This document shows, one piece after another, positions 2,004 to 63,412 of a stretch of 64,000 nt of DNA. A program made the position numbers and the translations under genes. Source of the stretch: Bispira polyomma (Eukaryota). Positions within the stretch are counted from its first letter, which is position 1. Every line of letters starts with the position of its first letter. The stretch covers positions 41,168,001 to 41,232,000 of the forward strand of contig OZ287752.1 in the NCBI GenBank assembly GCA_965649765.1, written 5' to 3'. The notes beneath the pieces were generated by a model, which was given only the letters and a program-made list of their open reading frames with translations, was not told the DNA's origin and did not search any database.

Positions 2004-2151
2004 CTGCTTTAGCCATACGTACAGCACACTCCCCAGTAGAAACACCAGCCAGATCAGAGATAGGTCCAATACACATGCTGGCTGCTACTGGAAGCTTGGA
2101 CTCTTTGGCCACTTCAATCGCCCATTCCATTTCCTCCACAAAAGCAAAATA
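2004..2151 (-). CDS. BHMT: BHMT copy A coding exon 4 (148 nt)
   Basis: [49 protein letters not shown]; AG/GT flanks. Confidence 0.92.
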
Positions 2152-5100
2152 CTAACGGGAAAAAAGAATAAAAAATATAAGAAAAATTGTTACCATATAC
2201 TATACACAGTAGAACCTCTATTATTGGAACATGTTATGAGAGGGCAAGATTATGATTTTTGGATAATAGAAGGTTCATAGTATAGAAGCATTTCTGTATA
2301 AACAATAGAAAACTTAAATTTGGAAGAGTGGAAAATAAGTTCATAAAATTGAATATTCTGATGACAGAAGTTTGGCTAGTAGAGGTTCTACTGTACCTAT
2401 AAATGAAGTCAATAATACAAAACTAGAGAAACACAACATTTGCATTAGATGTACAGTGAAGCCATGTTAAAATGTGTTCTACTTAATAGAGTTTTTATTT
2501 AACAGGGTAAATTTTACTTAGCAATATAGTAATAGGATGTTAAATTAACTTCTACTTAAGAGGTAGTTCCAGTTATTAGAGTTCTACTTAAAGGGGTTTG
2601 ACAGTATTCTCTCTTTTAGAGTCATGTATCAATACTCAGGTAGAGACGTATGACATTAAAAGGATATAAACTCAACTTTGGGGGCCATTATTATTAAAAA
2701 TTACAAACTTGTTACAGATAAGCATAGCAAGAAGCAAGAGTGTTTACTTGAGGATGAAATCACCACTAGTGCTTATAATTAACAAAAATGTTGCGTAACA
2801 ATCTTATAAACATGATGTTCAACTTGAAAGTAATTTTATACAAGAGGAAAGTGACCTTGCGGTCACAAATCTTGGAGACATGTATCTATTTTTCAAGCTG
2901 TCTACCTAAGAGTAAACCAATATTATCTGTCAATGCATAAGTTACAACCAAAAAAATATCTGTCTACCTGTCTACCTATGACCTAAAATACAATTGTCAA
3001 TATATAAGTTACAAAAAAGGAAATTATTAGACAACCTATTTAAATATTAAAAAAATATTATCTGTCTACCTGTCAACTTGTCAACCTGTCTACCTAAAAG
3101 TAAAAAGAAATTAATCAACTGTCTATCTGTCGACATATCCACATGTAACCTGACAGGTTGACAAGTTAAAAATTTTTTTGATTGAAGGTAACTTTTAATG
3201 GTTTAGGATTAGGGTTTAGGGGAGTTAGCCATCATTCTTTAGCCTAGATATCTCTTACACTTAAAGTTAGGGTTTAGGGGAGTTAGCCATCATTCATTAG
3301 CCTAGATATCTCTTACACTTAAAGTTAGGGTTTAGGGGAGTTAGCCATCATTCTTTAGCCTAAATATCTGTTACACATAAAGTTAGATATAATCCCCTAA
3401 CCCCTTAAGCCTAAAATAATTTCGACCTGACAGCTTATCTTTCGTAAAAAATGAAAAAATTAGTCTACCTGTCGACCTAACTACCTGTCCAACTGAAAAA
3501 AATTAAATTTCTACCTGTCAGCCTGTCTACCTAATTTTTTTTTTTGTTAACCTGTCGACCTGTCTACCTAGAAAAATATTTGTTTTTTTTTGTCAACCTG
3601 TCGACCTGTCTACCTAGAAAAAAAATACTATTTTTTTTTGGTCAACCTGGGGAAAAAAACATATATACATGTATATATAATAGGATCTATATTTCAATTT
3701 ATTTATATATATCCCTACTGGTACATGGAAATAAATGTAATCATACAAATGAGGGGGAATACTAGACTTCTTCAGATATCCCAATATAGTGTCTGAAAGC
3801 AATATATTGCTATACGAAATTTAAAAGCAAGTACAGTATTTTCACAATAAATCCTTTAATGTCGCCCACTTCCGGGTCGCGTTTTAAACGAAACCTCGCC
3901 TCGTGTGTTAAATAAAAGATATTATAGTGAGGGAGGAAGTTCTGAAAGACGAGTACCCCCATAAAACGCCCCAAATATGATAATAATAATAATATATCAG
4001 ACTTTTTTAGCGCTTACTTTCGTTGTAATGAATTCTAAGGCGCAAAAAAACCAGAGCCAGAGTCGAAAAACATAGGTGATAGACAGAAGGAAGTCGTCAT
4101 CAATGCGTCCACCGTGAATGGGAAAGAGACTATGGAGGGAATGCATCATTGAAAAGATAGGTCTTTAAACTGCGCCAGAAGGAATACAGGGACGGAGCTG
4201 TCCTAATGTGTTGAGGCAAACTATTCCATAGGGTAGGGGCATCATTTGCAAAACTTTTATCAAAGTGAACCTTTGACCTGTGTACTTGGGACTTATATTT
4301 TGGAACAAGAAGGAATCTATTTTTAGGAGCGGTTCTCCTGGTATTGACATTGCACTTGTAATAACTCAAGTGTGGTTCAAAGTATTTAGGCAAACCTGAA
4401 TCAAGAAATTTATACACTATTGTAGCAGTTTTAAAAACACACCGATACCTAACAGGGAGCCAGTGGGGTGACTTCAGAATCGGTGAAGCATTTGAAAGCT
4501 GAGCAGAACAACTGACCAGACGTGCCAATGAGTTCTAGATGCATTGCAATTTCTTTAGGTCCTTTTTGGTCAAGCTGCGATACAGTGAATTTCAGTAGTC
4601 CAGTCTGCTACCAACCAGAGTATTTGCTGCAGTTATTAAAACCGATTTTGGAAGGTACCTCCTGATTCTCCTAAGGTCTCTGAGACCCATGAAGCATGAC
4701 TTACACACTGATTGGATATGACTGAAAAATGAAAAATCAATGTCAAACAATACTCCTAGGTTCCTCACTTTATCAGTTGGGAATAACAGTGTCCCAAGAA
4801 TGTTTGCAGGAAAAGAATTTGACAGTTCAGCACGTTGAGTGCCCGACCCAAAAAATATGAATTCGGTTTTAGAAGGATTCAGCTTGAGCTTATTTAGCGC
4901 CATCCAATTTTGAACATCTGCTAAGATGATAATGTAGGCGAAAATAGACAAAATATAGGCGAAAATAGAAGGAGTCCACAGACTTTGCCTGTGTTAATAA
5001 AATATATTCTAGCGAGATAGGAAGTTTTGAAAGCCGAGTACTCAACCGAAATTCTCCAAAAGTGATGAGAACGTAAGTGATTTACAAGCCGCTCGTGTCA

Positions 5101-5327
5101 AATAAAATACACGAAAAGTGATGACGTCAACACAGAAATGCTAGTACCGAGTATCTGAAATACTTAAAAATAAAAAAAAGACTGTAGTGTGGCGCTGTCT
5201 AGCTGTTGAGACCAAAGTTAAAAGGCGTGCGTTCTCGCAAGCTAGAAGCATAATATAAAGAAATGGATTTTCCCATCAGTATGGGTGTATATATATATTG
5301 TATATATATCCCAAACCCTAGTCTTTG

Positions 5328-5366
<39 letters not shown>

Positions 5367-8300
5367 CATTGAAACCTACGAATCTGACTGGCCCCACGAA
5401 AAATGGACATAACAAAATATGTGGTAATTGCGAGGTCAAATGTTAAATCTTATTTTACAAACAAAATAAAAAAATAAATAGATATATTAAGACTTCTGAC
5501 TCGTCCTTAGGACCAACCACATATAACTGCCAAAAAACGGACTTAAAATAATGGACGAAACTGGTAGAAAGTGCTGTTTACAGACCAAAAACATCTTCTC
5601 AATACATGATCTTAATTCTTAACACCAAACCTTAAGGATAACCCTATACAGTTAATGCTGCTATAGTCGATATGGGAACCCAACTGCCTTAATTCTGTGT
5701 CAGAATATTTCACCTTTATTTTTAGACCTAATTTCAATATGGCTGTGCCTTGTCCTGTACATTCTAAAATTTAACTGAGAATAGACTAGATGTTTTGTTC
5801 TTACCTCACATATAACAAAGTCTACATCACACTGTTTGAAGAAGTTGACCTGTTTCCTGAACTCCTCTTGTACCAGCTTTTTGTCTTTGTTTGCCCGGTA
5901 CACGGGAGTCTCACTCAGACTGACTGACACCAAGGCATCTCCTTCCTGGGCAACTTCTCTGGCAATACGACAGGCGGCTAGATTAAGGTCTCCAGCCTAC
6001 ATAGTATATATTAAAGATATTGAGTCAAACTCCCTGCCTGTAGAACTTATAATGGGAGAAACATTTGTAGCTCCACAACAGCCTTTACTTTTAAAGCCCG
6101 CCTCTGCAATAGTACTGTCCTATTATTAAAAGACCTCTGGGATCTGCTGGCGTAGGTTCGACTATCGTCGATGCCTATGTGGGAAAGGTGGTAGTTCCTT
6201 ACTGTTAGCCACTGGTTTCGGTGTAGAATCTTGATCAACTGTATGCAGTGTTTCCTCCAGTGTTTCAAACTACCCGTCCCAATAAAACCTAAACAGGTAC
6301 TAAAGTGGACGTTAAATATCCCAATTCAATTCAATTCCTATTATTATATCATTAAAGAGATATATTGTAAGTACACAGCTGAAAACTGCATTGATATCTG
6401 CTTCCCAAAAAACAACCTGTGATTTTACTGATATAACAATTTATATGTATTTTTCTCCAAATCACATGTGTAAAATGTGGTCTGTATTATGTAATAACAC
6501 TTAAGAAATGCATATATAAACACATGGCATCAGTGTCTAACACAAATTAGATTTAAAAATCACACCCCTTTTAAAATATTTACCAGAGATGACCACAAAG
6601 TGTCTTAAATAAGACTCTCAATACCACCAATTACTGACAGAATAGAGGGCTGCAGTGGCCCAGTCGTTAGAAGTCTCCCTGCTTCACAATCACTGGCCTC
6701 TCACTAAATTAAATGTGGGTTCAAATCCAGATTGTTCCTTTATGTGGTAAAGTTTGTCAGGTACTTGCCTGTAGGTCGGTGGTTTATTGTGCTTCATCAC
6801 TGGTTTCTTTCACCATTTAATCTGGCCATGGTAATATGCTTTCTATTATTAAAACAAAATAAGAACGTTTCTACAGTATAAAGATTTGACCACTTTCCAA
6901 CCCATGATGTTGTAACATTTAAAAACAACAAAATCTGTGTATCTGTTGGTATTTTTAAGTTCAAAGCAACCTAAATATGACATTGCAACAGCGTGAACAT
7001 ATCCATATACATACATTCACATAACAATGTAAATGATATGATTGACATCATTTAAGAACGTACCGTCGGGTCGAGTTTCTTGCCTGTTGTTTTTTCAGTA
7101 AATTCTAGTTTGCTGTCTGTAGCATAGAAAGTGTAGGCTTGCATCACATCTGATCCGGCACGCAGGAATTCTCGGTGATATTGCTTCACTGAGAAAAAAA
7201 GCAACAGATGGTCGAAATTAATTTACAACCAATCAATATAAGAGAAGATCTGCATCAAAGTTCTGAAAGTTGTGGTTGAAAAATTGGAATGTCTAAAATT
7301 TGAATGATATGACCGTAATATCTGGGGCAAGCATTCCAATGTATATTGTGGGGCCACAGCTGTTACATGCGTAATGTACTCTTTATATAATTGATTGACA
7401 GGGGTTAACATCGCTTTCCACACATGGTATAGATCATATCAGGACGTCAAACAGTCTCACTGGTGGTGGAAATCAGCTCATACTAGTTGATCAAGATTGT
7501 GCACTGTGAACTACCAGGCATCGGCAGGTAACTGCCAACTTACCAACATAAAACCGCCACCAAGATTCAACCCATGGCCTCAGAGGTGGAAGTCTAGCGT
7601 GTTAACAATTATGCCACCATCCCCAATGTACCCTTATAACCTGAATTTAAGTAATTAGCCCAGCAAAGTTAGTAAAGCCACAAACATCCACCATGTTGTA
7701 CAAAGTATAAAAGCATTTGTGCTTCAACTATTTTTATCGAACATTTTTAACACACATTTTAGATGATATAAAATTCTAAAGCACTACAAACTTAGAAGTT
7801 GGTCATCTGATGGGATATCTTACGCACAAAATTAATGGTTTACTCCTTTGTCAATGATTTAGTGCTCCACAAAGTTCGGTCAAAATTAGTTCACTAGTTT
7901 TTGGCGGTATTTTTTTTTACCTCCTTGGTGGAGGTATACACTCCACTATACTACCCCATTAAAAAACAAGTAAACAAACTCACATTAGTTTTTGCGGAAT
8001 CCTGATAGAATGTTTATTTACTTTGATCCTTGGTGGAAGTATGCACTCCACCACATATACTACCACATTAACAAGCAAGCAAACAAACACACACAAAAAA
8101 ATCAACATACAAGGTTGGTGAAAACATAACATCAACGGCGGGGAGGTATTAATTAATCCAGTAAAATATAATCTCATAACTGTAATCAAATATATTAATA
8201 ATTTGAACTTTTTGTATACTGAGTACTACTAGTATTAGATTTGAGTTTGCCACAGTTGTTGTGTGTTATATTTGTCTCTGTGTACTAGGTAAGTGTATAA

Positions 8301-8482
8301 ATTTAAATAAATTAAATAAATAACCAACCTGCTTCCGGATGCTCATACACACACTCTGGCGTCCAGGGCCCTGCTTTGACATAACCACGTTTTTCTAGTC
8401 CAAAACAAAAGCCCCCATCACCAAGTACTGGACCCTTGGCTAGTCTCTCTAAAATACCCTTCCTTTCAGCTGACTTGGACAT
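2004..8482 (-). CDS. BHMT: BHMT-family gene copy A (5' part, exons 1-4; exons 5-8 lie beyond the left edge); most canonical paralog
   Basis: Exons 8482-8329, 7188-7064, 5996-5805, 2151-2004 with GT-AG junctions and phases 1,0,0,1. Spliced protein [76 protein letters not shown]...[20 protein letters not shown]...[11 protein letters not shown] matches the BHMT N-terminal barrel. Confidence 0.93.
2207..2393. mobile_element. pogo/Tigger-like MITE
   Basis: TIRs CAGTAGAACCTCTA / TAGAGGTTCTACTG followed by TA. Confidence 0.75.
2454..2604. mobile_element. Degenerate pogo/Tigger-like MITE
   Basis: TA|CAGTGAAGCCATGTTAA ... TTAAAGGGGTTTGACAG|TA. Confidence 0.5.
3209..3382. repeat. 58-bp tandem repeat x3 inside a degenerate (ctgtc/acct)-rich repeat region ~2895-3650
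   Basis: ttagggtttaggggagttagccatcattctttagcctagatatctcttacacttaaag starts at 3209, 3267 and 3325. Confidence 0.9.
3980..4951 (-). mobile_element. 5'-truncated L2/CR1-clade LINE (RT C-terminus and 3' tail)
   Basis: ORFs 4592-4951 ([30 protein letters not shown]) and 4130-4528 (HWLP, LWNSLP, LKTYLF); (att)n tail near 3980. Confidence 0.88.
5329..5364. repeat. (TA)n microsatellite
   Basis: Direct observation. Confidence 0.95.
5805..5996 (-). CDS. BHMT: BHMT copy A coding exon 3 (192 nt)
   Basis: [23 protein letters not shown]...DVDFVICE; AG/GT flanks. Confidence 0.92.
6129..6335 (+). mobile_element. 5'-truncated tRNA-SINE, family 1
   Basis: Homologous to 38081-38333 and 24683-24847; (aattc)n tail; 11-bp TSD TCCTATTATTA at 6118-6128 and 6336-6346. 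Confidence 0.85.
6647..6860 (+). mobile_element. tRNA-SINE with a Meta/V-like core
   Basis: Box A-like cagtggcccagtcgttag, box B-like ggtttcaaatcc; core tgtggtaaagtttgtcag...ggtcggtggttt resembles mollusc SINEs; reverse-strand relative near 60225-60400. Confidence 0.65.
7064..7188 (-). CDS. BHMT: BHMT copy A coding exon 2 (125 nt)
   Basis: [42 protein letters not shown]; ttctcag| ... |gtacgt. Confidence 0.92.
7430..7620 (-). mobile_element. Degenerate tRNA-SINE
   Basis: Reverse strand has tggtggcataattgttaac (box A) and gggttgaatc (box B), then ggtaagttggcagttacc; related pieces near 11730-11890, 12590-12705 and 35200-35365. Confidence 0.55.
8329..8482 (-). CDS. BHMT: BHMT copy A coding exon 1 (154 nt)
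   Basis: ATG at 8482; [25 protein letters not shown]; donor CAG|GTTGG. Confidence 0.92.
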
Positions 8483-8945: not shown

Positions 8946-9023
8946 TTTTAATCGAGCACTAACATACTTGCAAGAAGTATGTTGGTGTTTGGGATATTAA
9001 TTTTATTCTATGTTAAAATTCTA

Positions 9024-16307: not shown

Positions 16308-16392
16308 TCAAAAGTAAAAAGCTGTAGCAAAAGCTGTACTCTTTGGTCTTCCTGTGGAAGGTTCTAGATTTCTCCAGATCTCTTTTGATGAT
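16308..16392 (-). CDS. BHMT: BHMT copy B exon 8 (85 nt, terminal)
   Basis: [28 protein letters not shown]; aligns with BHMT KEYWENL..ASGRP. Confidence 0.9.
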
Positions 16393-19300
16393 CTGTAACA
16401 AGAACACCATGGTTGATGTAAAATATCTACCCTTTGGCTTTCTATAGTTTTAATGCAGAAAAAAAAATCCTTAAATTTCATGTTGATAAACATTGAAAAA
16501 TAATATATATTTTTGATATTATCAAGAGTTTTATTCATGAAATAAATATGTTTATATAGATATTGATATAAATATATTTGGCAATATATAAAATTACTAA
16601 GATGTACCTGTTCCTGAGTAAATCTCTGGGACTTGTTTCCAGACCAGACAGGATGTGGTCAAACTCTTGGGTAACTTCTGCTACTTTCCCACGTTCTTTT
16701 GTCAATTCTTCTGACATTGCCCTGTAAAGATATGGAACGATAGTCCATATTTAAGAGCTAAAAGAGCTGGATTACAAATGCTTAATGGATACTGTGTCTT
16801 ATTCAATTAATAAGCTGCATATATAACAATATACATTTGTTGATCATTATGTGTGTATATTTAGTTTAGTTATGCTACTAATACAATAAGATCGTTTGGC
16901 ATATGTGGCCCCTGAATAAAGACTGGCCTTATAATGGCAACATTGCTTCCATACCTTATGTGATAGGGTTCAAATCCACAGCATCCTCCAATGTATCTCA
17001 CACCTAGTTCGTAGGCTTCTCTGGCATACTTCTGGGCTTCAAATCTAGTAATCACCCTTGGCTCATATGCTGAAACCACCATACTAGTACAACTATTACA
17101 CAATCTAATAACAGCCAACTGAAAGACGAAATAATATGACAGTTTGATAATCACTTATCTGGCTGTTTCAATGTTGCCAGATCAAATCATAATATATATA
17201 TATATATATGTGATATATAACAAGGTGTTATATCGGTGTATGCATGCAATATTACTCTTCTTAAGAGAAAGAGGTACAATTTCTTGTTGTAGTTATAAAT
17301 GTTTAATTAACTTACAAATTTCATTATTTGTTACATGTAATGTGTTATATATTATATTGTTATCGCCTTGTTGTGGTCAACCGTGGCCTAGTGGTTAGGG
17401 ATTTGGTTGATGATGATGATGATCAGAAGGTCCTGGGTTCTATTCCCAGCACCAGCCGCTAGTTTCATTGGTGGGATAACATTCTTCGGCAAGATGTGTA
17501 CACATGTTTGCCTAGTGGCTTAGATGACCACGTAAAATGGTGGTCCTCTGTCACTGGGTCTTACCCCCAGTGGAAGGCTAAAGATCCTTGGGGACGTTTG
17601 TAAATGGTCATCCTCAAGCCTCTCTTTAGTTGGGGGAATGACAGTAACTGAGGCATTTGACTGTTGCAGTCAAGAGAGGGTTAATTAACTCTCTGAATAC
17701 CAGATGAAGGTATATATATAAAGTATATATCTAAATACAATACAATCAATACAGTAAATTAAAATGTTTAAACATACAACATGAAAATGTGTCAATTTAT
17801 ATCTGCATTAATATTTTTATTTAAAGTGTATTTAGGCCACAGGTAGATAGATATTCACGTCATTATTCCATGATACCAAATTACAATGAATCTGTAAATC
17901 TTATGCACATAATATAAAGAAGTAGCCAAAATAAGAGTCAATATAGGTTATATTAAGAGCCACAAACATGATTATAGACTGCCCAACCCCCTCACACGTT
18001 GGTTACGACAGTCAATATTATCTTGGTAAATTAATTTAATCCCAAAGGTCAATTAGCTTACACTTCAGCTAACGTATGTGTTCATTAAAAGGTGATAAAC
18101 AACATATAACATAGGTAAGAATATGGTGAATGTACTGGCAGTGTATTTACCCATATAGTTCTCCGGAGTGTGTAAATAGCCTTTCTTAGTCTCTATGTCT
18201 GGGGTAAGCAGTGCCAGTGACTGACACATTAGGTACGGCTTCAGGTTTTCCTTTTCTAGGGCTTCCTTCATCACTCTGATACTTTTCAATGAGACATTTG
18301 GTCCAAATGAACAGTTCACTCCAATGATATCAGCCCCTAATAACATACACAATATATTACAGAAAGTCAGTAATATAATTGAAACATTGTCCTGCAAAAT
18401 CTGACAATATTCAACTTCATAGCATTAAGATATGCAATAGAAGAAATTGGAACAGTATTTTTCAATAAAATGTTATGTGAAATGTAATGCCACAATATTG
18501 ACTAAACTAAAAGCACCCAACTTTAAATAACAAAATTAGAACATTTTCTGCAATTTATATTCATGGCTACTTTGTCTTATATACCAGCCACAACTATGGA
18601 CTTAATATTTTATTCCTAATTTATTTAGCTCTGACACCACTTTAATTTTACTTCAGCAGAGGTGAATGTTTACATTATGAATAAAGCTATCTATGGAGAC
18701 TTTATACAGTAGTAGTACCTGGCCACAGGAAAATATTTTACTCTAAATTGATAGCAGTATGTGACTATGGACAATACGTTCATATTTGTATATGACATAG
18801 AAATAACCTGCTTTAGCCATGCGAACGGCACACTCTGCTGTCGGTACATCATTCATATCTGCATGTGGACCAACACACATTGTTGATGCTACAGGTTTCC
18901 CAGTTTCTTTGGCAGCCTCTATGGCCCATTCAATCTCTTCTATTGTAGAGAAAAACTTAAGAATACATGGAAGTAAAGTAAAAATTATTATGACAACAAT
19001 CACAGCAGATTAAGTGTAATAGCCCAGTCACACCTACACATGTTAGAGCTACGTTTATGTGACGTTTTTAACTGTTTGGAAACCTAGTATAAAGGTAGTA
19101 GAAGCTAATGCCAAAGTGAGGATTCCTGGTGCGTTCGTTTGGTGACGTTACTTAATGGATGGTATCGTTCCGGAAACGTTTCCGTTTGGTCGGTGCGACA
19201 ATTATTTCAAACTGTTTGAAATAGTTGTGACAGAGCTCTCCATTTCTCGAGGACATCTCCACTCCTCTGTATAAGTAGCATAACGTAGCATAATGTAGCA

Positions 19301-22300
19301 GTAAATAGTGAGATCGTCTCCACTTGTCTGGTATTCGTCGTAGAACGTTTCACTAGGTATCATAACGCAGCCGAACGCACCAGTAAGTAACAGTACATAG
19401 TAGTAGGTAGTGATATCCTACCAATAAAGTGATCGATTTTTCCCCCACTTTTCCATTAAGATTACGCACCAGTAAGTAGCAGTACATAGTAGTAGGTAGT
19501 GATATCCTACCATTAAAGTGATCAATTTTTTCCCCCACTTTTTCCCCCCATCATCACAAAAACGTCACAAAATGTCTCAATCGACTGCACCTTGGTCAAA
19601 ATGACGTCACTTTGACACAAAACTACCCCGTTTTTAGATATGTAGCATTTCTACGTTGTGGGACGATAGCACGTTCAGGTGTAACAGGGCTATTAAGGTA
19701 AAAATTTATCTTATGTAATTATTATTATTAAATTTTTAATGCACTTTATTAATGCTAGGCATCTTCTAAAGCGTAACAGCAGAATCATTGATCAATTCAT
19801 TAAATCCATAGACATAGCAAAGGAACAAGGAAGTAGGAGCGTGCACGAGGGAAACTAATGTGGATAGGCAAGGTTTCAAACTTTTTTCTAAAACCGCTAA
19901 GTGTGTCAACTGGGCTGAGGTTGGGAGACTGTTCCATAACAATAGATATGCAGTGGAGAACGCTCTGGATCCCGTCTTCCTGATGGGACTGACCCAAGAG
20001 ACAGAGAGTCTGTTGCCTCTCTTGCGCTTACTGAAGGAGAGTAGGAGAGAAGGGAAGCAAGGTAGGAGGGCTGTTGAGTAACTACAGCCTTAAAAGTGCT
20101 AACATGAATCTTGAACAAAAGATGAGAATGAATGGGCGGCCAGTGTAATTTGTTGAGGTAAGGAGTGACGTCTGTGCGACAACCCAGGCAAAAAATAACC
20201 CTGAATAGGTGGTTTTAGATGGACTGGAGCTTTTTAATATGTGACTTGTTTGCTCCGTCCAGAAGAGAGTTGCAGTAGGCGAGGAGGCTACTCACAAGGG
20301 CATTAGCCACAGTTATTGCTGTGTTCATGGACAGGTGGTTTTGGATTCTTTTGATGTCACATATATGGTAATAGCATTTTTCTTGCTATAATCAATGTTT
20401 AGTCATACTCCTAATATAGGTCAAGAAGCGACAATTTCACAACATGGCATTTATCATCAGTTGATGGTGTGTTTCCAAGGATGTTATCCAACAATAATAA
20501 CCATTGAGACCTTCTGGTCATCAAACTGATTATTTCTCCAGCTGGGAGTCAAACCTGGACCCTCTGATCACCTGACCAACTCTCTAATTACTAGGCCACG
20601 AAAGAAACACATAGATATGAAATGTACTACTAAATTGCTTTATTCTTTTTTAATAGTTTTTGTTTTTACACAAAGACATACAGACAATGCACGATTACAA
20701 TATACACAATATACAGAAAACATAATTTGTATTGGAATGTCTGGAGGTAAGTTTCTATTCCAGTTGGATGTGATAGTTTAAAACTTTTTGTACCATGGGA
20801 CAGTTTCAAGAAATAGATAGGTTTCAATCCATTTATCCAGCGATGTTGGTGCTTGCATTTTTTTGTTTATAATCTGATTAGACTCAATGCATCTAATTTC
20901 AAACTAAACTTCTCGATGAATTTGTCTGTTTGTAATATCTGACCTTGATAGTTTGTTAGGTCTGCAAAAACTATTTTTTTTTGCATGAATTACAAATAAT
21001 TTTAGCTCTTTTGCTTGTACAGGTTTATCCTGTATACATATATATTTTAGTGTTTGGAGGAACAGCATGAAATTCTAACCAGCAATCAATAACTTGTTTA
21101 TGGAATGGTGTAAAACCCTTATCTGTGTGAAAGGCTGGCAGTTTATTTTTAATTTTATACTGCTGTATATTTAACACATACCATTTTAGGTTTTGCAATT
21201 TTCCTTGTGAATCTGATTTTGTAACTATTTTTTAATTCATTTAATTTTTGAGGTTAAGTGTATGCCGTAAATATCAGGCATTTCGAGACCTCCATTGAAT
21301 ATGGGGCAATTATGGTACCCTTTTAGATTTGTAGATATTCCCAATGTTTTAAAACGGTTTCAATTGATACTTATTTTGTTTGTCGTTTTTGATAATGTTA
21401 TACTTTATAATTTACATGTACCAATATATATATATTCCATATTGATTTTTAGACCAAAAGAATTCTCAAATTTACGTAAAAGTGCTATTAATTGAACAAT
21501 GGATTTAATATTATTTACAAATATTGTTGTATCATCAGCTAGTTGGCATATTTTATATTCTCTCTTCTCTATCCTTGTACATGCTATATTCTGATTATTT
21601 CTGATTTTGATAATTATAATTTCAGCTATCAATATAAAGAGGAACGCTGATATTGGAGATCCTTGTGTTATGCCCCTACCATATATTTGAAAAATAGCCA
21701 TTATTAATAACACAGGATTCTATTTTGTGTACAGTATTTTTATCCATTGCAAAAGTTAAAAGATTTTAATGTTCCGAAAAGGAATGGCCATTGAACACTG
21801 TCAAAAGCCTTTTCAAAGTCAACAAGAACTAGGCTTAGCACGACAGAGAACGGATGCATATTTGTATCCTCCGGAAAGACAAAGCACCCTAGGTAGCAAG
21901 CACCCTAGCTAGCACCCAAGGTAGAAGCCTTTGATTTCCTTTGGGGCATTTATGCTTAAGCCTTAAATGGCACAAGTGGGTTTCATATTGCAAACCTGTG
22001 GGACCAATAATAAGTGTGAGATAGGCATTTTAAAGTTGGCCTACACATTTGACCTTGAACGAGGGGTATAAGGTAATAGCTGACCATATCAAAACCAGCC
22101 CATGATTTCCTACAGGTTGGTTCACATCCCAAACTTGTACAACCAATAAAAAGCGATATATAGGCAAATTTAAGTTAGACCAAGATTGATGTTTAGTTAG
22201 GAGCCCAAAGTCAAATCAGATCACACCAAAAGATTCCCAGGCCTTGATTTCCTACAGGTTGGTTTTAATATTCAAAACCTCTAGAACCAATAGTAAGCAA

Positions 22301-25300: not shown

Positions 25301-26411
25301 TTGTCACATAATTTTACAGGTTTCGCTATGTGAAGACATATTGTATGCAGAAACGAGATGATGGGTTTTATGTATGGGACAGTGTATGTAGTACTGTCAT
25401 CAAATTGATGAATGAAAGTGGCCAGAGTTTACCACACATCTGGGCCTCACCAAATGATATGAAACATCAGGGAAAATTCTTAACAACTGTGTCCTGATGA
25501 GGTGAATCCTTAAAAAATTAAAACATAGCCACATGTTTCGCAAAATCGGAAAACACCTGCATTAGCTTCTCAAACTTTACGATAGAGTTGTCAAACTAAC
25601 TTGGATCGACAAAATGAGAAAAAAAAAGAAAAATTTAAGCATAGAATAAATCTGTTTTTACACCGGATACATTACTTGTGGTCACAGAATCTAGTGTACA
25701 AACCGGTGAAAATGGAAAGAAATGCTATTTTAATATAAAGTGTCATTACCAAATATCCTCTGAACTGGGAAAAACAAATATTATGTGGTCATTTTATGAA
25801 AAAAATCTCTTTTTATATAAATGATATGCTTAATATTTTACTAATTCAAAGTTTTGCGATATGCAACATTTGCATTGGATTTAAAAAATTTAAAAAGAGT
25901 TTCCCGCCAATTTCATTATGTTGGTCTCCCATGTATCCAAACCTCCAGTCATTCCAACCAAAAGTCATGTTTCTAGCAGTTTTCAGATAAATGGTACATA
26001 ATATTTAACCTACGTTTATAGTTTTCTTTCCTTTGACATTGCTCCATCTCTTCGTTATGCTGTCTTCAGAACCAGCAAAGGTAAAAGCTTGCATAACGTC
26101 AGAACCATTGCGAAGAAACTCACGATGTAGTTGCTTGACTAGTACCACATATTAAAATAAAAAAGAGACATCAATAATATAGAAATTGAATTATGTGCTA
26201 ATACTGAATACAGGAACAAAATATATAAATGTTGTCAATAAATGGATAAACTATAAGCTATACCTGCTTCTGGGTGATTGACTGTACATTCTGGTGTAAA
26301 GACTCCAGATTTTACATAGCCCCTCTTTTCCAGTGCAAACACAAATCCACCATCTCCCAATACTGGACCCTCAGCCAGTCTTTCTAATAACCCTTTCCTT
26401 TTGTTAGCCAT
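16308..26411 (-). CDS. BHMT: BHMT-like gene copy B, complete, 8 coding exons, 371 aa
   Basis: Exons 26411-26264, 26138-26014, 23483-23289, 18955-18808, 18336-18151, 17069-16955, 16721-16608, 16392-16308 total 1116 nt in one open frame, all GT-AG. Zn motifs GVNC and [10 protein letters not shown] present; TGA at 16310-16308. Confidence 0.95.
16608..16721 (-). CDS. BHMT: BHMT copy B exon 7 (114 nt)
   Basis: [37 protein letters not shown]. Confidence 0.92.
16955..17069 (-). CDS. BHMT: BHMT copy B exon 6 (115 nt)
   Basis: [39 protein letters not shown]. Confidence 0.94.
17372..17705 (+). mobile_element. tRNA-SINE, family 2
   Basis: cgtggcctagtggttag (box A), gggttctattccc (box B); body gatgaccacgtaaaatggtggt...aaatggtcatcctcaagcctct shared with 62510-62790. 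Confidence 0.75.
18151..18336 (-). CDS. BHMT: BHMT copy B exon 5 (186 nt)
   Basis: [27 protein letters not shown]...[19 protein letters not shown]; first Zn-ligand Cys. Confidence 0.93.
18808..18955 (-). CDS. BHMT: BHMT copy B exon 4 (148 nt)
   Basis: [49 protein letters not shown]. Confidence 0.93.
19020..19692. mobile_element. MITE with Harbinger-like termini and an internal ~80-bp duplication
   Basis: TIRs TAGCCCAGTCACACCT / AGGTGTAACAGGGCTA with TAA/TTA flanks; cgcaccagtaagta...cccccactttt duplicated within 19376-19542. Confidence 0.75.
19718..20385 (-). mobile_element. L2/CR1 LINE 3' fragment
   Basis: [33 protein letters not shown]-like motifs; microsatellite tail near 19720. Confidence 0.82.
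20640..21826 (-). mobile_element. Tx1/L1-clade LINE RT fragment
   Basis: [29 protein letters not shown] and QLADDTTIF (ORF 21405-21713). Confidence 0.85.
21821..22800 (-). mobile_element. Helentron-associated (HINE-like) element with internal tandem subunits; inverted copy of 28334-29064
   Basis: atgcatatttgtatcc...caaagcacc..ggtagcaagcac..tagctagcacccaag is the reverse complement of ~28965-29037; repeated catgatttcctataggttggtttcacatcc/gacctt units. Confidence 0.75.
23289..23483 (-). CDS. BHMT: BHMT copy B exon 3 (195 nt)
   Basis: [33 protein letters not shown]...DVDFIICE. Confidence 0.93.
23600..24095 (-). mobile_element. 3' end of a Tx1/L1-like LINE with poly(A) tail
   Basis: [10 protein letters not shown]...IYQNEYYA...FKKIW C-terminal pattern; T-run at ~23605-23618. 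Confidence 0.6.
24683..24847 (+). mobile_element. 5'-truncated tRNA-SINE, family 1
   Basis: 12-bp TSD TACATCAAAGGC at 24671-24682 and 24848-24859; body shared with the 6129 and 38081 copies. Confidence 0.87.
26014..26138 (-). CDS. BHMT: BHMT copy B exon 2 (125 nt)
   Basis: [42 protein letters not shown]. Confidence 0.92.
26264..26411 (-). CDS. BHMT: BHMT copy B exon 1 (148 nt)
   Basis: [49 protein letters not shown]. Confidence 0.93.
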
Positions 26412-53649: not shown

Positions 53650-55200
53650 CCTTAATATTTTCCACAAAAAAACATTCATTTGTCTCATTCATACCATTTC
53701 TACAGGCCTAAAAAATCTGGTAACTCTAAGTCTCAACAAGTTCATCTTTACCAATATTGACTATTTTTGCCATACTATTTATATTATTGCTTACATTAGA
53801 ACTATTCCCTGACAAAGCCAACTTAGCACAAGTAGAGATGACATAGTTAATACTAGAAATACAACTCTAAAAAAACTTTAAAAATCTCTTATACATCTGC
53901 ATGTACAACTCTTGGTCATCACATATAGAACTAAGGTACCTGTTGTGGGTACGTGGAGCTAATCTCCATATCACAGACTTCCTCCAGGCTATTGTCAAAT
54001 CCTTGAATTCTTTGCTATTATAATCCCACAAAACACATCCATATAGTGATTTACAATATCTTTTGAACAATTTAAACCTGACACATGAATGGGTCTTAGA
54101 GAATATAAAATTTATACAGTTTGTTGCTACAGTAAATTTATCCTTAGCCACTTTAACTATTTCATTTTTATTGTCAGAGCTAATTTGCAACACTAAATGA
54201 GAAACACTTCTAACAGTTTTAATGAATATACCATTATGGGTTATACCAGATATACCACCAGTTGATATTTGTCTAGATCAAACTTGATATCAAAATCTGC
54301 ACCAAATTGGTCACATATCTGTGACTTTATTTTGATACAAGAAACCGTTGGACATAGTAAAGTTATATTATCTGCATATCCAAAACTACCCATGTACTCA
54401 TTGCTAATATGACACCCTACACCACTTTTCTTTAATCTCATATACAATTCATCAATGTACAATGAAAACAAAATGGGAGACATAACACCTCCCTGTTTAA
54501 CTCCATTTGAGACATTAAAATATTTCGACAAATAACTTCCCCATTTAACATTTATCATTTGAGACAAATACATATTCATCATCAATTTTGTAACTTTAGG
54601 ACAAAGACCTTTATTAACCAATACCTCAAAAAGTTTTTTATATTGCACACAATCAAATGCTTTACTTGTATCTAATAACATTAAGTACATATTTTTACTG
54701 TTATTCATATAATACTGAGTAATTTCATTATTGACAATGAACATTTTGTTGTAGAATGTTGTGACTTGAAGCCAAACTGATATCTACTTGATTCAAACAC
54801 ATGCTTATTCAGTTTTAACGGAACTAAATCAAATAGTTAACCAAAAACACTGCTGAGAGCAATAGCTCTATAATTATTAGAACCATTCAAAGACTTTCTC
54901 TTGTCCTTTGGGATAGGAATAAGTATTGATTTTGAACAATAATTCTGAAGGTATAACACAGTATTTTAACATTGCACAAAATGCTAATGATATGTAGACA
55001 TATAGTCTGTGCGTCCCATATTTGATATTATTGGTACAATACCTGTGACCACTATCATATTTTCCTAATTTAAATTTTTTACTTTCACTAATGATATCTT
55101 GTACAGATATATTATGATCCGACTAACACTTTTCCCTGATCACATATATGTCCAATGTTCTTATCAACTACATTTTCTAAATTTTTTATTTTACTTTTAT
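53650..55200 (-). mobile_element. Non-LTR retrotransposon RT fragment (RTE-X-like)
   Basis: ORF 54241-54744 LLDTSKAFDCV...NGVKQGGVMSP.LFSLYIDEL...YADNITLL; ORF 53867-54193 LFKRYC.SLYGC.LW. Confidence 0.85.
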
Positions 55201-55578: not shown

Positions 55579-55581
<3 letters not shown>

Positions 55582-55687: not shown

Positions 55688-55772
55688 TCAGTAATAGAGA
55701 GTGGTGGCAAAAGCTGTACTTCTGGGTCTTCCAGTAGAAGGTTCCAAATTTCTCCAGATCTCCTTAGATGAT
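55688..55772 (-). CDS. BHMT: BHMT copy D exon 8 (85 nt, terminal)
   Basis: [27 protein letters not shown] (TGA 55690-55688). Confidence 0.9.
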
Positions 55773-58700
55773 CTGAAATAAAAATACAGGTACTAATAAT
55801 ACATAAATAATTGTGACACTACGTAAATACATGAGCTTAATGCATTACAATTTAGAACTAAGTAAAGCTGAACCATTTATTACCTTAAAAACACAAAATT
55901 GTTTTTTATATATGAAACGGATTGGTACCAAAAGGCTTGTCTTAATTGATTGACAAAAAAACATTATTGTAAGCCTCTGATTTTGTCACATGGACATGCA
56001 TTTTTCAAACGATCATATTAATTATATAACCTGTTTCTGAGTAAATCTCTGGGACTTGTTTCTAGACCAGACAGGATGTGGTCAAACTCTTGGGTTACTT
56101 CTGCTACTTTGCAACGTTCTTTTGTTAATTCCTCTGACATTGCCCTACACAAAAATATATTGGAACAGCAGGGGTATTATCTAGACATCCATATGACTTT
56201 TGTAAATAACTTCTGCACACACTAGATGTAATATGTGATACATAAATGGCTCCCTATAAGTGGAAACTTTGGTTGATCATTTATATATTAGTACTGTTGT
56301 GAATTTAGGTATTCCAAATGGAAATCTTGCATGAAGTCACGAGAGTTCACACACAAACAGTGGAAAATCTGATCGATAAAACTTCAGTTAGAATGTAGAT
56401 TTTAATGTAAACTGACCTGTTTAGAATCATCTGTGAAGGGATACAAACAGACGGGTAAAATATACTGCAGTGGTAATGCTGGTATTGGTATTCAAACTTA
56501 TATTTAGCACACCACCTCGCCTAGTCTATGATTCAAAGTGCCAATAAAGCTTTTTGACTCCGAAAGTAAGTTCAGCAAACAGACGTTTTATCAATCTCCG
56601 CCAGAGGATTTAGTCTGCAGAGGATGACTGTTTTAAACTGTGATCCAAGCTATTGCGTATCTGCCTGACCTAGGAATTTTAAAGCACACGAACAAAATTA
56701 TCAACTTTGAACTCAATTTTTGAGTTTATAGTTCAACTAAACTAAAAACTGTTGATATTCAAAATTCGGAGTATACGTTAAAACAATGTTCAGTTGTTGG
56801 CTCAGGAGGTGAGCTGAAAATATCACACTGGAAGCTGAGGAACTTTTGATTTAAGGGCCTTTGTGAAGAAAATGATTATTCCATGATTAGGAATAGCTAT
56901 TTGATTACTCTCTGAATGATGCTATTTATTGCAACCTTTGATTCCGTAGAGCTAAAAAAAGCAATGTTTATAGCAATGTGAGATCAAAATACCAACTTTA
57001 CTATAATTTCTGGTGACACAAAAACTGACTTCATACGTCGGAGTTTAAAGTAATACAGCCACAGGTTAGGTTTCAAAAAAGTTTTAATGCATTCCTAAAC
57101 AAATGTGTTTTACACTCGACCAGAGTTGCATTATTACTTCTGTTGTTGTGCAAGCATATCACTCCGCTGTATTGTATTATGGATTTTAAACGGGCCTTAT
57201 TGATGCAAAACGTATGATACCAAATGCATATTCTTTTCATCTGGCTATTGATTTAATATTGTGATTTTTTACCTGATGTGATATGGTTCAAATCCACAGC
57301 ACCCTCCAATGTATCTCACACCCAGTTCATAGGCTTCTCTGGCATACTTCTGGGCTTCAAATCTAGTAATTACTCTTGGTTCATATGCTATAACATAATG
57401 AATTATAAAATGGGGTTAAGTATATATTATTTTAATTATGAACAAAGAAATGTTTAATCTCTTTGAGATAAGTGTTCATGAATTCCAGCACAATCCGACA
57501 GCTGAATAAAATAAACTTATTTTCACCATATTAATGACAGATGAGAAAATCATAACATATAAAACATATTTGCACTAAAGCTTACTGCATCAATATGACC
57601 ATGTCTATTGCTACATTTATTTAATCCACTCAAATTGTAAACAGATCTGAATGCCCAAACAGGCATATTTCCAGCTTTCTTCTCATCAATGACCTTCATG
57701 AAGCCAGTTTGACCTTGAACCTTACCTGTAAGATTATTGAATCATACAGAAATACCCCAGTCAGTTCAATGGCATATGACTAAAATACTGGAAATGTACT
57801 TTATGACCCCCAACCTGAACTTGAATCTAAGCTCAGAGATGAACTTGGAACTTTTGGGGGTCCACAACGTGGTTCACAACCTAACCTTTAAGATTATACC
57901 GCACTACCGAAGCAATATAGTAGCAAGTTTGGTGTCAATCCAAGTACATTAGAACCTTTGAGTTACGGACATTTTGAGAAAGTGAGAATTTGTTTGGATA
58001 ATAGAAGGTCTGTAAAGTATAAATTGCATAATAGTATAAAACAATAGGAAAAAACTGTTTGTGAGTGACTTTCAATTGGTAAAATCTAATATTTGTAGTC
58101 GACATCTCCATGAGGGCCTTTCAATACAAAATTCTCTTAAGAATCATTCCAACAAATAAACATTTAAAATTATGTAAGATAACAGAAGATGATAAATGTG
58201 ATTTCTGTAAAGTATCAACAGAAACCATTGAACATCTCTTTTGGTTTTGTCCAGTGATTAACAATTTTTGGAAAAAATTATCTGACCGACTACAAAGGTG
58301 TATAGAGATTCAAGAAATGCTTAATCTCAAAACTGTATTGCTGGGACATACAAATATTAACAACGAGTTGCACAATCATATATTTAATATTGTAAAAAAA
58401 TATATCTATATTACAAAATGTAAAAAAGAAGAACTCAGAGTTGAACAACTAGTCAGACTTTTAAAATATTATTACAATATTGAAAAACTACTAGTTGAAC
58501 ATTACAACAAAAGCATAGACAAATTTAAACGTAAATGGGGACCTTTAGAACAATTTTTAACAGCATAAAATGAAAGATAGCCAACATCATTAAATAATTT
58601 TGGTCTAATGAAATAAAAAGTCAGTGGCCACATCGATCAATGTTGTGGGAGCCAAAAAAAAAATTTAAAAAAAATGAGTGTGAATGAAATTTGAAGTATA

Positions 58701-61700
58701 CTCTTTCAAGTGTTAAATTTGCAAATTTATGTAAAGTGTAATTGAATGTACATGTAGTTAAAAGTGCTTACACCGCATGTTTGTAATACTGTTATCATAT
58801 TCTGATGTGTTTTTGTTTTTTGAAAGATATGGAAACTTGTTTTACAGCTCTAGAACTAAAATGTCTCTCTGTCAATGCATTTAAAAATAAAAAAAATTTG
58901 GGTTTCTCCTGAAGTTACGATACCAACACTAATGTATAAACTCCCAGTCAGTGTTCTTAAATGAATGATGATTAAAGCTTGTGGAATAGCTATATTTTTA
59001 ATGTATAAACTATCTGGGTATCTTTTGTACACTGTGTTGTGTATGCCATTGTAAAGGGGTCAGTGGGAGGTTGCAACCTCTTTTCCTCCGCACTGTACTC
59101 TTCAACAAATGTTGATTTTTTCTTTTAAAAGGGGGAATAAACCATAAAATGATAAAAAATATTTGTATGAAAAACGGTTGTATGATAGAGGTTTTATCAG
59201 AACATTTTTGAGATATAACACAATATACTGAAAATGAGGTCAAAATTGCTCTATCTCGAGCCGTATTTTTTTGAGAAAAACACAGCACTTCAAGATGGCC
59301 CCCAAATCGGAATTTTTCGGAAAAGTTGTTATAGACTCTAAACAAGATGCCTTTTAGGCCGGAAATGAGGTCAAAATCTATCTAGCCCCATTCCCGAGAT
59401 AACAGACGTTTGCACTGGCAATCTTTACAAAAATTTAAAAAATTTTAATGAATAGGTGGCAAGGCATATGCATGCAAAATTACAGACTGATCCCTTCCGG
59501 GGTTCTGGAAAAGAAGATTGTCAAAGAAAGTGTACAGGAAGTAAAAAAAAAATCAGGAAATCTCTAGCACCTGTAGTTTAAGAGACGAAGCTGTTGACAT
59601 GGACACAAATATGTACGCGGATGCCAACCCATTGGAATAAGTCAGCTGACTTAAAAAAGAAAAAGAGAAAGTATGAGTTTGATTTACTATTTACATAAAC
59701 TTTTGTTGAAACTAAAATATATATCAATCAAATATCTTCTCACAGTCATTAGCTGTTTAGTAAGGTTTTATTCTTACCAAGAAAGTGCTCTGGGGTGTGC
59801 AGATATCCTAGGCCAGTCTCTATGTCTGGGGTATGTAGTGCCAGAGGTTGGCATATAAGGTAGGGTTTAAGGTCTGCTTTATCAAGGGCTTCTTTCATAA
59901 TCCTCATGCTTTTTAATACGACATTCGGCCCAAAACAACAATTTACGCCAACAATGTCAGCACCTGTAGCATACAAAACATACTTCACATTAAATGTTTG
60001 TTTGTAAGACATGATTTGAAGTTGTTTATTCTTGTACAACTGCCAGCCAGTGCAGCCATCTTACTTTCTGACTTCCTGATAGTATGCACCAAGCTGTCTA
60101 TGGTTGTTTTAGTTAAATCATACACATTTCAGCTCAGATTTATTTTATTTGTCCTTACCACATATAGATCCACACGTTCACTGGTGTTATTTTATACTTA
60201 ATACAACCATATATGCGAATTTTGTTGGGTTTTTACGTCACTTTTAACAGCTTAGGTCATATCATGATGGCCAGATTTAATGGTGAAACAAACCAATTCT
60301 AATGCACTGTAAACCACTGGCCTACGGCAAGTACCTGACAAACTTTCCTACATGAAGGGACAAACAGAATTTAAAACTACATTGATGATAGGCCAATGAT
60401 TGTAAAAAAGAAGCTGACTGTTTTAGATTGATGTTTGTATGTTACGGTGTTTATAATTAAGAACAGTTATGAATTTTTAAAATCTAACAATGACATAATT
60501 AAGCTTACAGGTTTATACTAGATTTACACTGGATGATGTTGCCCCTTTTTGTTTTGGGATGATGTATGAAATCTGTTAAGTATCGTAAATATACATCCCT
60601 TGCAAGACCTATTTCTGTTAATTGCCAAAAATTATATAAATACACCTGCTTTAGCCATGCGTACGGCACACTCTGCTGTTGGTACATCATTCATGTCTGC
60701 ATTTGGACCAACACACATTGTAGCTGCCACCGGTTTTCCTGTTTCTTTGGCAGCCTCTATGGCCCACTCCATCTCTTCTATTGTGGGAAAGAACTTGTTG
60801 TGTAAAATAGATTGAGAAAAAGTAAAGCATATTACTGTATTTTATAAATGGGATTACTATCATTTTCTGCAATGATGTGTTATTACATGTAGGTTACCAA
60901 ATAAGTCCAAAAGGTTATTGTAAAATTAATCTAAATTATAATAGCCTTTATAATATTCTGACAATATTATTTTCCATCAGCATTTAATTTATTCTGAAAG
61001 TTTTTGTGGCATTTTGAAAGAGACTCAACCTTCCATATAGATTTAACATTTAAGGTTGATATATATAATTATAGTTTTGCTATTGTATTAATTTAGTAGT
61101 CAGCTTTATAATTTAATGGGTGTTCCTGCTTTAGTTAAATTTTGAAACAATAATACAATAGCATGATGCTGCGGACAGTACAACAGCCTATATGCCATCA
61201 TGGTGGAGTGGGATACATAGGACGGCACTTATTCAAACACATACCTCTAAGTTGCCACGATGTACCACATCGCAAATAACATCCTAGATCTGCATATTTA
61301 CCTTGTTCTGTTCCCAAATGTATTGGATTATTTCTTGTCTTATGTCTTTTCCTTCACTGAACATGATGTAAGGTAAAGTAAAAAAGGGAAATAGGGGGAA
61401 ATATACCTACTTGGCAGAGGTAACTATTTAAAAAAAGTTTGAAATATGTATTATTTCTGAAACAATATTGTGAGCATTACCTCACAAATGATAAAATCTA
61501 CATCAAAGTCTTTAAAGAAATCAAGTTGCTTTCTGAATTCTTTAATGACATCTGTTTTTCCTTTTCTTTGATGTCTATAGGCCAATGTTTCTGAAATACT
61601 AACGGACACAAGGGCATTTCCAGTGTCAGCAACTTCTCGTGCCAGTTTAAAGGCAGCTATATTCACCTCCGGAGCCTTGTGATATAAAAAAATATATAGT

Positions 61701-63412
61701 AAAATAATGTCATAAATCAAGCAATTGTAATCACATGTTTACAGCATATTTATAAACATAAATGTAATAAAATGGTATCAAGTGACGCAGTCGTACAAAT
61801 TGATGGTCAAGTATAAAATTTAATGTTACAGTAGGAAGAAATATTAGAATTTAGTTTGTTATACTATAATGTACTGTATCATAAAATGAATGTAGCCTCA
61901 TAGATATTTACATACTTTTGGAAAATAGAAACAATCTTACATCTATCTTTTTTCCTTGGTCTTCCAAAGTCAACCTGGTCCTTATAAAATCACCCGTTCC
62001 ATAAAAAGTAAATGCTTGCATGACGTCAGCACCAGCTCGTAGGAATTCCCGGTGAAGCTGTCGAACTAAATTGGAATTAGAAGACAACAGTACTGTATGA
62101 AATAGGATATAAAGACTTTATGGAACAAGTTGCCTGTGGATATCAGATCTTCAAAATCACTACTAGAATTTAGAAAACAGCTCAAAACATACCTTTTTAA
62201 ATGTGCTTATAATGTTTAAAATTTTAATGATCAGCGCTTAGAGACACCTTATTTTGGTACACAAGAAGAATGTACATTGAAGAGACAGCTCTCTTAGGGA
62301 AACAGAATTGGCATTTTATTTGAAACAGAATTAAACCAATTTGGTTTGTTCTCCTTGAGTGTTCTTCAAAATACAATCATTACATAGAGATAGTATTTTC
62401 AGGGTCAAGCTTATAGCAATTTGAACAGCAAAAGTCAGGCTAGGACATGTCATTGCACATAAAATAATGAATTTCCTTAATTCGTGATTTCTAGATTATT
62501 GAGATACATTGTGCTACTGTGGACTAGTCGGTAACTCACTCGCTTAGAAACAGAAAGAACGTAGGTTCGATCGCAGCCTGGGTTAACCCAGTACCGGCAG
62601 ATATAGAGTAGCTTGGATGACCACTTAAAATGGTGGTGCTCTTCATTGGATCCTATCCCCAGTGGCAAAGGAACGTTGATAAATGGTCACCCCGCAAGCC
62701 TCTTTCTTCAGAAGAATAATAGTAACTGATGGTAGTTGGCAGTCAAAGAAAAGGTTAATTGCTGCGCATATATTTAATTACCAAAAGATTCTAAACAAAT
62801 ATATCAAGCTTATGAACCAAAGCCCACAAGTGATGTTAAATATCAACTCCTGGAAAAACTGCCCATAATGTGCAGGGTAGCAGTAAAAACATAAAAAAAT
62901 ATTTAGCAGCAGTATTTATATTCGACCTCTTCTGTAAATCTGCCGCTAACATGTAAGTCAAGAATAGGGACGACACATGGGTAGACAAAAATTAATGTTT
63001 CATTTTTTTTTTTTGTCAACTTTTCTTAGAACCATATTTTTTTTGTAATTTTATTATTTTTCATGTACAATATTATGCCGTTTATTACTTCTAGCAACAT
63101 TGTAAAGTTGTAAAAATCTTGGTACAATAAATCCACAAGCCCATATTGAACAGACTAGCAGTAGACCTGCCTCTTTTGTGAGCAGCAAACCCAGTCCTTA
63201 GGAACATTTTATCAGAAACTGTTACTGAGGGGCAAACTGAATTGTCAAGAAACAAATTCCTAACCTGCCTCTGGGTGATTGACAGTACATTCTGGTGTAT
63301 AGACAGCAGCTTTCACATAGCCCCTCTTTTCTAGTGCAAAACAGAATCCCCCATCTCCCAGTACTGGACCCTCAGCCAATCTTTCTAATATCCCTTGCCT
63401 TTTGTTAGCCAT
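55688..63412 (-). CDS. BHMT: BHMT-like gene copy D, complete, 8 coding exons, 371 aa
   Basis: Exons 63412-63265, 62065-61941, 61675-61481, 60793-60646, 59963-59778, 57387-57273, 56144-56031, 55772-55688 total 1116 nt, open frame, GT-AG. GVNC and GGCCG Zn motifs present. Confidence 0.95.
56031..56144 (-). CDS. BHMT: BHMT copy D exon 7 (114 nt)
   Basis: [37 protein letters not shown]. Confidence 0.92.
57273..57387 (-). CDS. BHMT: BHMT copy D exon 6 (115 nt)
   Basis: [39 protein letters not shown]. Confidence 0.94.
57995..58895 (+). mobile_element. Tx1/L1-like LINE 3' end (zf-RVT) in intron 5 of copy D
   Basis: ORF 58110-58568 [16 protein letters not shown]...CDFC...[10 protein letters not shown]...FW; A-rich tail near 58885. 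Confidence 0.85.
59778..59963 (-). CDS. BHMT: BHMT copy D exon 5 (186 nt)
   Basis: [27 protein letters not shown]...[20 protein letters not shown]. Confidence 0.93.
60646..60793 (-). CDS. BHMT: BHMT copy D exon 4 (148 nt)
   Basis: [49 protein letters not shown]. Confidence 0.93.
61481..61675 (-). CDS. BHMT: BHMT copy D exon 3 (195 nt)
   Basis: [33 protein letters not shown]...DVDFIICE. Confidence 0.93.
61941..62065 (-). CDS. BHMT: BHMT copy D exon 2 (125 nt)
   Basis: [42 protein letters not shown]. Confidence 0.93.
62115..62250 (+). mobile_element. L2/CR1 3' end fragment
   Basis: LWNKLP...[10 protein letters not shown] then cagcgcttagag tail motif. Confidence 0.65.
62510..62790 (+). mobile_element. 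tRNA-SINE, family 2
   Basis: gtggactagtcggta / ggttcgatc boxes; body shared with 17372-17705. Confidence 0.72.
63265..63412 (-). CDS. BHMT: BHMT copy D exon 1 (148 nt)
   Basis: [49 protein letters not shown]. Confidence 0.93.

Follow-up and report, generated by a model that had tools for sequence, protein, structure and literature searches.

A tandem cluster of divergent, C-terminally short BHMT-like genes encoding putative thiol methyltransferases in Bispira polyomma

To our knowledge, BHMT (betaine-homocysteine methyltransferase) provides one of only two routes from homocysteine to methionine in animals. The canonical enzyme is classified as EC 2.1.1.5 and is represented by the human and rat structures 1LT7, 1LT8, 1UMY and 4M3P; the mammalian BHMT/BHMT2 pair is the textbook example of a donor switch following tandem duplication. 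Here, we describe a cluster of four BHMT-family genes, designated A to D, in a 64,000-nt stretch of the 1.04-Gb, AT-rich genome of the animal Bispira polyomma (contig OZ287752.1, C5:41168001-41232000; hereafter, the window). The genes were located by tblastn using the exon-bearing open reading frames (ORFs) of one copy as the query, and are arranged head-to-tail on the minus strand between approximately 2 and 63 kb of the window. The cluster comprises three intact genes (A, B, and D) and one pseudogene (C).

Gene models of the cluster

An initial annotation of the window had proposed four head-to-tail minus-strand BHMT genes, and the models presented in Table 1 agree with it in arrangement and in the exact outer coordinates of the array. 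The array is nevertheless smaller than the "at least four" genes counted there, with three working genes and a pseudogene, C, whose disablement had not been recognised. The genes B and D each consist of eight exons of 148/125/195/148/186/115/114/85 nt, separated by seven GT-AG introns and encoding 371 codons. These exon sizes had been assigned to the copies in common; they hold exactly for B and D, whereas the first exon of C is shortened and the exon 6/7 region of A is split differently. The sizes of 154/125/192/148 nt proposed for the first four exons of A were confirmed. The remaining exons of A (186/152/77/88 nt) extend this gene to 5.4 kb beyond the window start; all of its introns are GT-AG, and its frame is open over 373 codons. 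In B, D, and A, 21 of 21 splice sites are canonical.

Single exons match human or rat BHMT in the PDB with E-values of 1e-12 to 1e-15. Pfam scans were run exon by exon rather than on joined models, and the 22-bit cut-off of the S-methyl_trans family (PF02574) was reached by single exons, including exons 3 (22.0 bits) and 6 (25.3 bits) of D; exon 6 of A alone scored 29.8 bits. The array proteins are 50-60% identical to canonical BHMT.

The array had been suspected to extend beyond the window, and the flanks and the rest of the genome had been pointed to as places where additional copies might be found. Only the 3' half of A lies outside: no fifth copy was detected within 40 kb on either flank, where the search added only the 3' exons of A. 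Whole-genome searches with two exons and the Pfam profile revealed, beyond the array, a single BHMT locus on another chromosome (C2).

Table 1. Features of the window and pocket replacements in the encoded proteins and their orthologue X (positions of the window; residue numbers of human BHMT)
Feature	Position	Strand	Remarks
Gene D	55688..63412	-	Intact, 371 aa; 8 exons, all introns GT-AG, open frame, PDB and Pfam matches
D exons 1-4	63412-63265, 62065-61941, 61675-61481, 60793-60646	-	
D exons 5-8	59963-59778, 57387-57273, 56144-56031, 55772-55688	-	
Gene C	33868..44514	-	Pseudogene of the same type; homologous exons, exons 3 and 5-8 open
C exons 1-4	44514-44454 (shortened), 41762-41638, 38045-37851, 37464-37317	-	
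C exons 5-8	36852-36667, 36229-36115, 35137-35024, 33952-33868	-	
C lesion 1	44452..44454	-	Exon 1 stops after 61 nt
C lesion 2	41758..41760	-	In-frame TGA as second codon of exon 2; CGA in D, AAG in B
C lesion 3	37465..37467	-	Exon-4 acceptor AG moved 1 nt too far 5'
Gene B	16308..26411	-	Intact, 371 aa; 8 exons, all introns GT-AG, open frame
B exons 1-4	26411-26264, 26138-26014, 23483-23289, 18955-18808	-	
B exons 5-8	18336-18151, 17069-16955, 16721-16608, 16392-16308	-	
Gene A, 5' half	2004..8482	-	Exons 1-4 of an intact 373-aa gene: 8482-8329, 7188-7064, 5996-5805, 2151-2004
A exons 5-8	2460-2645, 3515-3666, 4693-4769, 5349-5436 nt before window base 1	-	Outside the window
A pocket			V30C, F74Y, H218N, F261Y, F267T; W44, Y77, Y160 kept
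B pocket			W44F, Y77A, A78G, Y160F, H218S, F261Y, F267N
C pocket			Y77G, A78G, H218A, F261Y, F267N; positions 26-44 deleted
D pocket			V30C, W44Y, A78G, Y160F, H218C, F261Y, F267H
X pocket			V30C, W44F, Y77G, A78G, Y160F, H218S, F261Y, F267N
RVT_1 ORF between D and C	54244..54783	-	Reverse transcriptase; Pfam, E 9e-17; not part of the genes
zf-RVT ORF in D intron 5	58110..58565	+	Retroelement remnant; PF13966, E 1.3e-8

The copy C carries three lesions. Past codon 21 (GAT G) of its first exon, the sequence continues directly as GTATAGCTT, with a GTATAG that is similar to the start of B intron 1, and the 87 nt encoding human residues 27-55 are missing. No trace of these 87 nt was found in the region of 41.7-46.5 kb, and the shortening is best read as their in-frame loss. 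The stop codon in exon 2 yields V*QLH, as compared with VRQLH/VKQLH, and use of the displaced exon-4 acceptor (TTTCAG/GTAC versus AAG/TT in B and D) adds one base and shifts the frame. In comparison with B, copy C shows a ratio of non-synonymous to synonymous divergence (dN/dS) of 0.13 at a dS of 0.41. The changes on its own lineage (6.5 non-synonymous and 10.5 synonymous) are far from neutral; with exons 3 and 5-8 also open, the inactivation of C therefore looks recent. A genuine tandem array with one pseudogene bears out the birth-and-death expansion proposed in the initial annotation.

Orthologue, selection, and phylogenetic position

A search with exon 3 of D, whose matches were nearly all anonymous pieces of exon size, led to an intact orthologue in another organism, denoted X, on the 570-kb contig ctg30300l of the ENA assembly ERZ22147071. 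X has the same eight exon sizes as B and D, GT-AG introns throughout, and 371 codons; the exons of B match it at 76-98% amino acid identity. No second copy was found within the 25 kb upstream of X or the 16 kb downstream of it. The assembly is labeled as a metagenome; the part of the contig that was walked (217920-282172) is clearly of animal origin and carries spliced BHMT-like genes together with numerous reverse transcriptase and integrase ORFs.

The dN/dS values of 0.134 (B-D), 0.057 (B-X), and 0.084 (D-X) show that purifying selection acts on B, D, and X as protein-coding genes; the corresponding silent divergence within the array reaches a dS of 0.71-0.76 for both B-D and C-D. These values bear on two alternatives: decay of the whole array into relics that are no longer transcribed, and an artefact of the assembly or of haplotig duplication. 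The presence of one pseudogene among the four copies agrees with decay. The complete frames and canonical splice sites of B, D, and A, the dN/dS of 0.06-0.13, and the intact orthologue in another organism argue against it, and duplication by assembly was rejected, as the initial annotation had anticipated, since the introns are unrelated and dS between copies amounts to 0.4-0.8. The introns range widely from 125 to 4463 nt, and the only intronic likeness among the copies is a 172-bp segment of 84% identity in intron 2 of B (26013-23484) and C (41637-38046). We therefore regard decay or artefact as highly improbable.

The separate locus, designated E (C2:20731192-20737896, plus strand), is the canonical BHMT orthologue of this genome. 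Its product shares at most 80% identity with the best canonical BHMTs retrieved (JGI/Logan proteins) and 77% with that of Lamellibrachia, and carries every canonical signature residue. E groups with the BHMT of this annelid weakly in the careful tree and with an SH-aLRT (Shimodaira-Hasegawa-like approximate likelihood ratio test) support of 96 in the quick tree. The first coding exon of E seems to be preceded by another 5' exon, and the last exon, encoding the C-terminal helix, was not located in this gene. Five of the seven intron positions of the array genes are common with E. Unlike E, in which the region of exons 6 and 7 is one unsplit exon of 229 nt, the array genes contain an additional intron that divides this exon into 152+77 nt in A and into 115+114 nt in B, C, D, and X. 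The sixth intron of A is located 37 nt further 3' than in the other copies, which implies that the family either gained an intron here twice or saw one intron move by 37 nt.

The main tree included 17 named canonical BHMTs from cnidarians to mammals, among them those of the annelids Owenia and Lamellibrachia; a 40-row set with BHMT2 and short paralogs was used for a quick tree only. In the main tree, A and the group of B, C, D, and X form a clade with 100/100 support on a stem of 0.6, with the B-D-X group on an additional stem of 0.5, so that B, C, and D constitute a derived clade, as initially proposed. The trees fix no attachment point of the A-D clade among bilaterian BHMTs. In the quick tree, orthology to BHMT2 was rejected, since the BHMT2 sequences fall within the mammalian BHMTs, away from the A-D clade; nor does this clade group with the teleost short paralogs, which lie inside ray-finned fishes. 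A grouping of the A-D clade with the short paralogs of decapods was obtained without resolved support.

The placement of X differs between data types. In the protein tree it nests with B and C at 91-97% support, whereas at silent sites it lies outside B, C, and D (third-position distance of 0.42-0.46 versus 0.22-0.34), and monophyly of B, C, and D was not rejected in the approximately unbiased (AU) test (p = 0.195). The silent sites and the solitary position of X favour a lineage-specific duplication of D/(B,C) later than the split from X, with faster evolution of the D protein. A few anonymous exon-3-sized ORFs on ENA contigs are slightly nearer to X or A than to canonical BHMT, so the divergent clade may have additional members in other organisms.

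Active site, donor pocket, and C-terminus

The array proteins resemble canonical BHMT in the PF02574 barrel, the DGG motif, E159, and the zinc site. With residues numbered as in human BHMT and the numbering checked against PDB alignments, all three zinc ligands (C217, C299, and C300) occur in A, B, C, D, and X. The residues that bind homocysteine (D26, G27, G28, F29, and E159) occur in A, B, D, and X; the segment of residues 26-30 is deleted in C. It is the donor side that differs. The residues V30, W44, F74, F76, Y77, A78, Y160, H218, F261, and F267 are invariant in E and in all canonical BHMTs sampled, from sea anemone to mink, whereas positions 30, 44, 77, 78, 160, 218, 261, and 267 are replaced in a copy-specific manner in the array (Table 1). 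The pocket aromatics at positions 44/77/160 are F/A/F in B, F/G/F in X, and Y/Y/F in D; only A retains W/Y/Y. We take W44 and Y160, from structural and mutagenesis work, to participate in betaine binding and zinc coordination.

The L2 motif DKLxNRGN is absent from A-D and X, in which the loop is rewritten and two residues longer, and the dimerisation arm has diverged. All five sequences terminate 7-9 residues after the SGRP motif and lack the linker and C-terminal helix (371-406), approximately 34 residues. The copy A had been regarded as canonical in the initial annotation; this assignment belongs instead to E, since A also has an altered pocket and L2 loop and no C-terminal helix. In published work, Tyr77 and Phe76 belong to the betaine site (PMC3871600, citing the rat structure), and residues 86-94, in the L2 loop, are required for betaine activity (PMC4516251).

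Mammalian BHMT2 has been treated as the sole known donor-switched paralog (PMC4516251, PMC4303824); it is a monomeric enzyme that takes S-methylmethionine as its donor and in which residues 86-94 and the C-terminal 34 residues are missing (PMC4516251). Like the array genes, it is a tandem duplicate of BHMT, and its product has the same end point after the SGRP...SKPD region, a replacement of Tyr77 (by Ser in BHMT2, by Ala in B, and by Gly in both C and X), alterations at positions 218 and 267, and a changed L2 loop. When the array proteins were compared with these features, the C-terminal loss was seen, whereas L2 was found to be replaced and not deleted. BHMT2 also differs in its independent origin inside mammalian BHMT and in keeping W44 and Y160, as opposed to the replacement of both residues and the long L2 of other sequence in B and D.

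Short "BHMT 1-like" paralogs of 362-370 aa from teleosts, decapods, and horseshoe crab have the same end point as the array proteins, and F261Y, F267Y, A78S/C, and, in most teleost and decapod members, Y160F recur among them. At most 58% identical to B or D, these paralogs retain W44 and Y77 as well as an L2 motif that can still be recognised, and they belong to separate clades. This pattern looks like recurrent evolution of the short form in teleosts, decapods, and horseshoe crab; together with mammals, short, pocket-altered BHMT paralogs appear to have arisen several times, and the A-D clade is the most divergent of them. The MmuM/YagD-type homocysteine methyltransferases (HMTs; PDB 5DML), which use S-methylmethionine or S-adenosylmethionine as the donor, share the Pfam family and the zinc chemistry with the array proteins but form a distant branch.

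To gauge how rare the pocket changes are, 281 retrieved proteins of the BHMT family, all 250 aa or longer, were compared. W44 is present in 277 of these; Ser takes the place of Y77 in the 22 BHMT2-type sequences, and Phe that of Y160 in 21 teleost and decapod short paralogs. No protein of the set has changes at positions 44, 77, and 160 together. In addition, two profile searches designed to favour the A-D clade, with 8000 candidates scored in each, returned canonical BHMTs, BHMT2s, and short paralogs from other phyla, but no member of this clade. When scored with these profiles, B and D reach 381-383 bits versus a list cut-off of 355, and with their own rows left out, X and A score 344 and 318 bits, respectively, versus a cut-off of 301. 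With this number of candidates scored, the result indicates rarity among proteins known from annotation or transcripts, and not absence. Divergent BHMT paralogs of annelids or of any other invertebrates are not described in the literature searched, in which annelid BHMT is mentioned only with regard to its presence or absence (PMC10414810).

Methyl donors of the cluster

On these grounds, we propose, with a probability of about 0.6, that the locus is a tandem cluster of a divergent, C-terminally short BHMT-like subfamily whose members act as thiol methyltransferases with donors in place of or besides glycine betaine. Judged by the retained zinc and homocysteine sites, the array proteins would still be zinc-dependent thiol (homocysteine) methyltransferases. 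In the mechanism envisaged, the homocysteine thiolate would be activated by zinc and would attack the methyl group of an onium compound held in the pocket; in B, this pocket has lost all three betaine-contacting aromatics. Because the donor-side pocket and L2 have been rebuilt differently in A, B, and D, these copies probably use methyl donors other than, or additional to, glycine betaine; because the linker and C-terminal helix are lost, the array proteins probably do not form the BHMT tetramer. A thiol/zinc half that is frozen, a donor half that varies from copy to copy, purifying selection, and a canonical gene located elsewhere are together what would be expected of donor diversification, for which BHMT2 provides a direct precedent.

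Several observations weigh against this proposal. With W44, Y77, and Y160 retained, copy A might still be able to use betaine, and Y160F is also found in the uncharacterised short paralogs of teleosts and decapods. The genome encodes a MmuM/YagD-type HMT apart from the array (C10:19737550-19741408) and the B12-dependent methionine synthase MTR (C2:98557890-98610010), with at least six genes containing the PF02574 domain in total, so that extra remethylation routes are not obviously needed. Since both enzymes are present, the S-methylmethionine route may already be covered; this donor may already be handled by the HMT. Furthermore, the two profile searches of 8000 candidates each found no full-length protein of the A-D clade in the protein collection.

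The residues retained in A, together with the zinc and homocysteine sites kept in all copies, would also suit a set of ordinary betaine-dependent isozymes with unchanged substrate and with expression split by tissue, stage, or salinity, and regulatory subfunctionalisation is frequent among tandem duplicates. This explanation is nevertheless unlikely: all four copies have a rewritten L2 loop, the element required for betaine use (PMC4516251), and residues that are invariant in canonical BHMTs from cnidarians to mammals are lost in B (W44, Y77, and Y160) and D (W44 and Y160). Still less probable, in our estimate, is that homocysteine remethylation has been abandoned in favour of methylation of another thiol or a selenol, or of a non-catalytic binding or structural role. 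The strong divergence of the dimerisation arm and C-terminus and the removal by Y160F of a residue near the metal site would fit such a change, and rhesus monkey BHMT is a lens crystallin (PMC4516251). It is opposed by the conservation of D26, G27, G28, F29, E159, and the three cysteine ligands at a dN/dS of approximately 0.1.

Returning to the proposal of altered donor use, a narrower version, which we advance only tentatively and consider doubtful, is that each of B and D, and perhaps also A, is a homocysteine methyltransferase adapted to an onium donor of its own other than betaine, for instance a sulfonium or ammonium osmolyte from algae or bacteria. If so, a worm lineage would possess a methionine-salvage enzyme set that arose independently of mammalian BHMT2. 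The particular donors named in the initial annotation for the array enzymes (dimethylsulfoniopropionate, proline betaine, and others) are speculation.

By sequence, the array appears to be a new, strongly diverged variant on the BHMT/BHMT2 theme. It could represent an independent and more radical repeat of the BHMT/BHMT2 experiment, in which the donor half was rebuilt three ways in adjacent genes while the zinc/thiol half remained frozen, with the separate canonical gene serving as a built-in control. Should the donors differ, the cluster would connect one-carbon metabolism in animals with methylated osmolytes from the diet or the environment, and would supply naturally occurring variants with which donor recognition by the BHMT pocket could be studied; otherwise, it would be an ordinary lineage-specific gene family expansion.

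Among the remaining ORFs of the window, those at 14721-15254, 4595-4993, and 48295-48624 have no Pfam match. Retroelement remnants lie in the D-C intergenic stretch and within the fifth intron of D (Table 1). The fifth intron of X, approximately 11 kb long, is expanded by a retroelement and contains a reverse transcriptase ORF of 874 aa.

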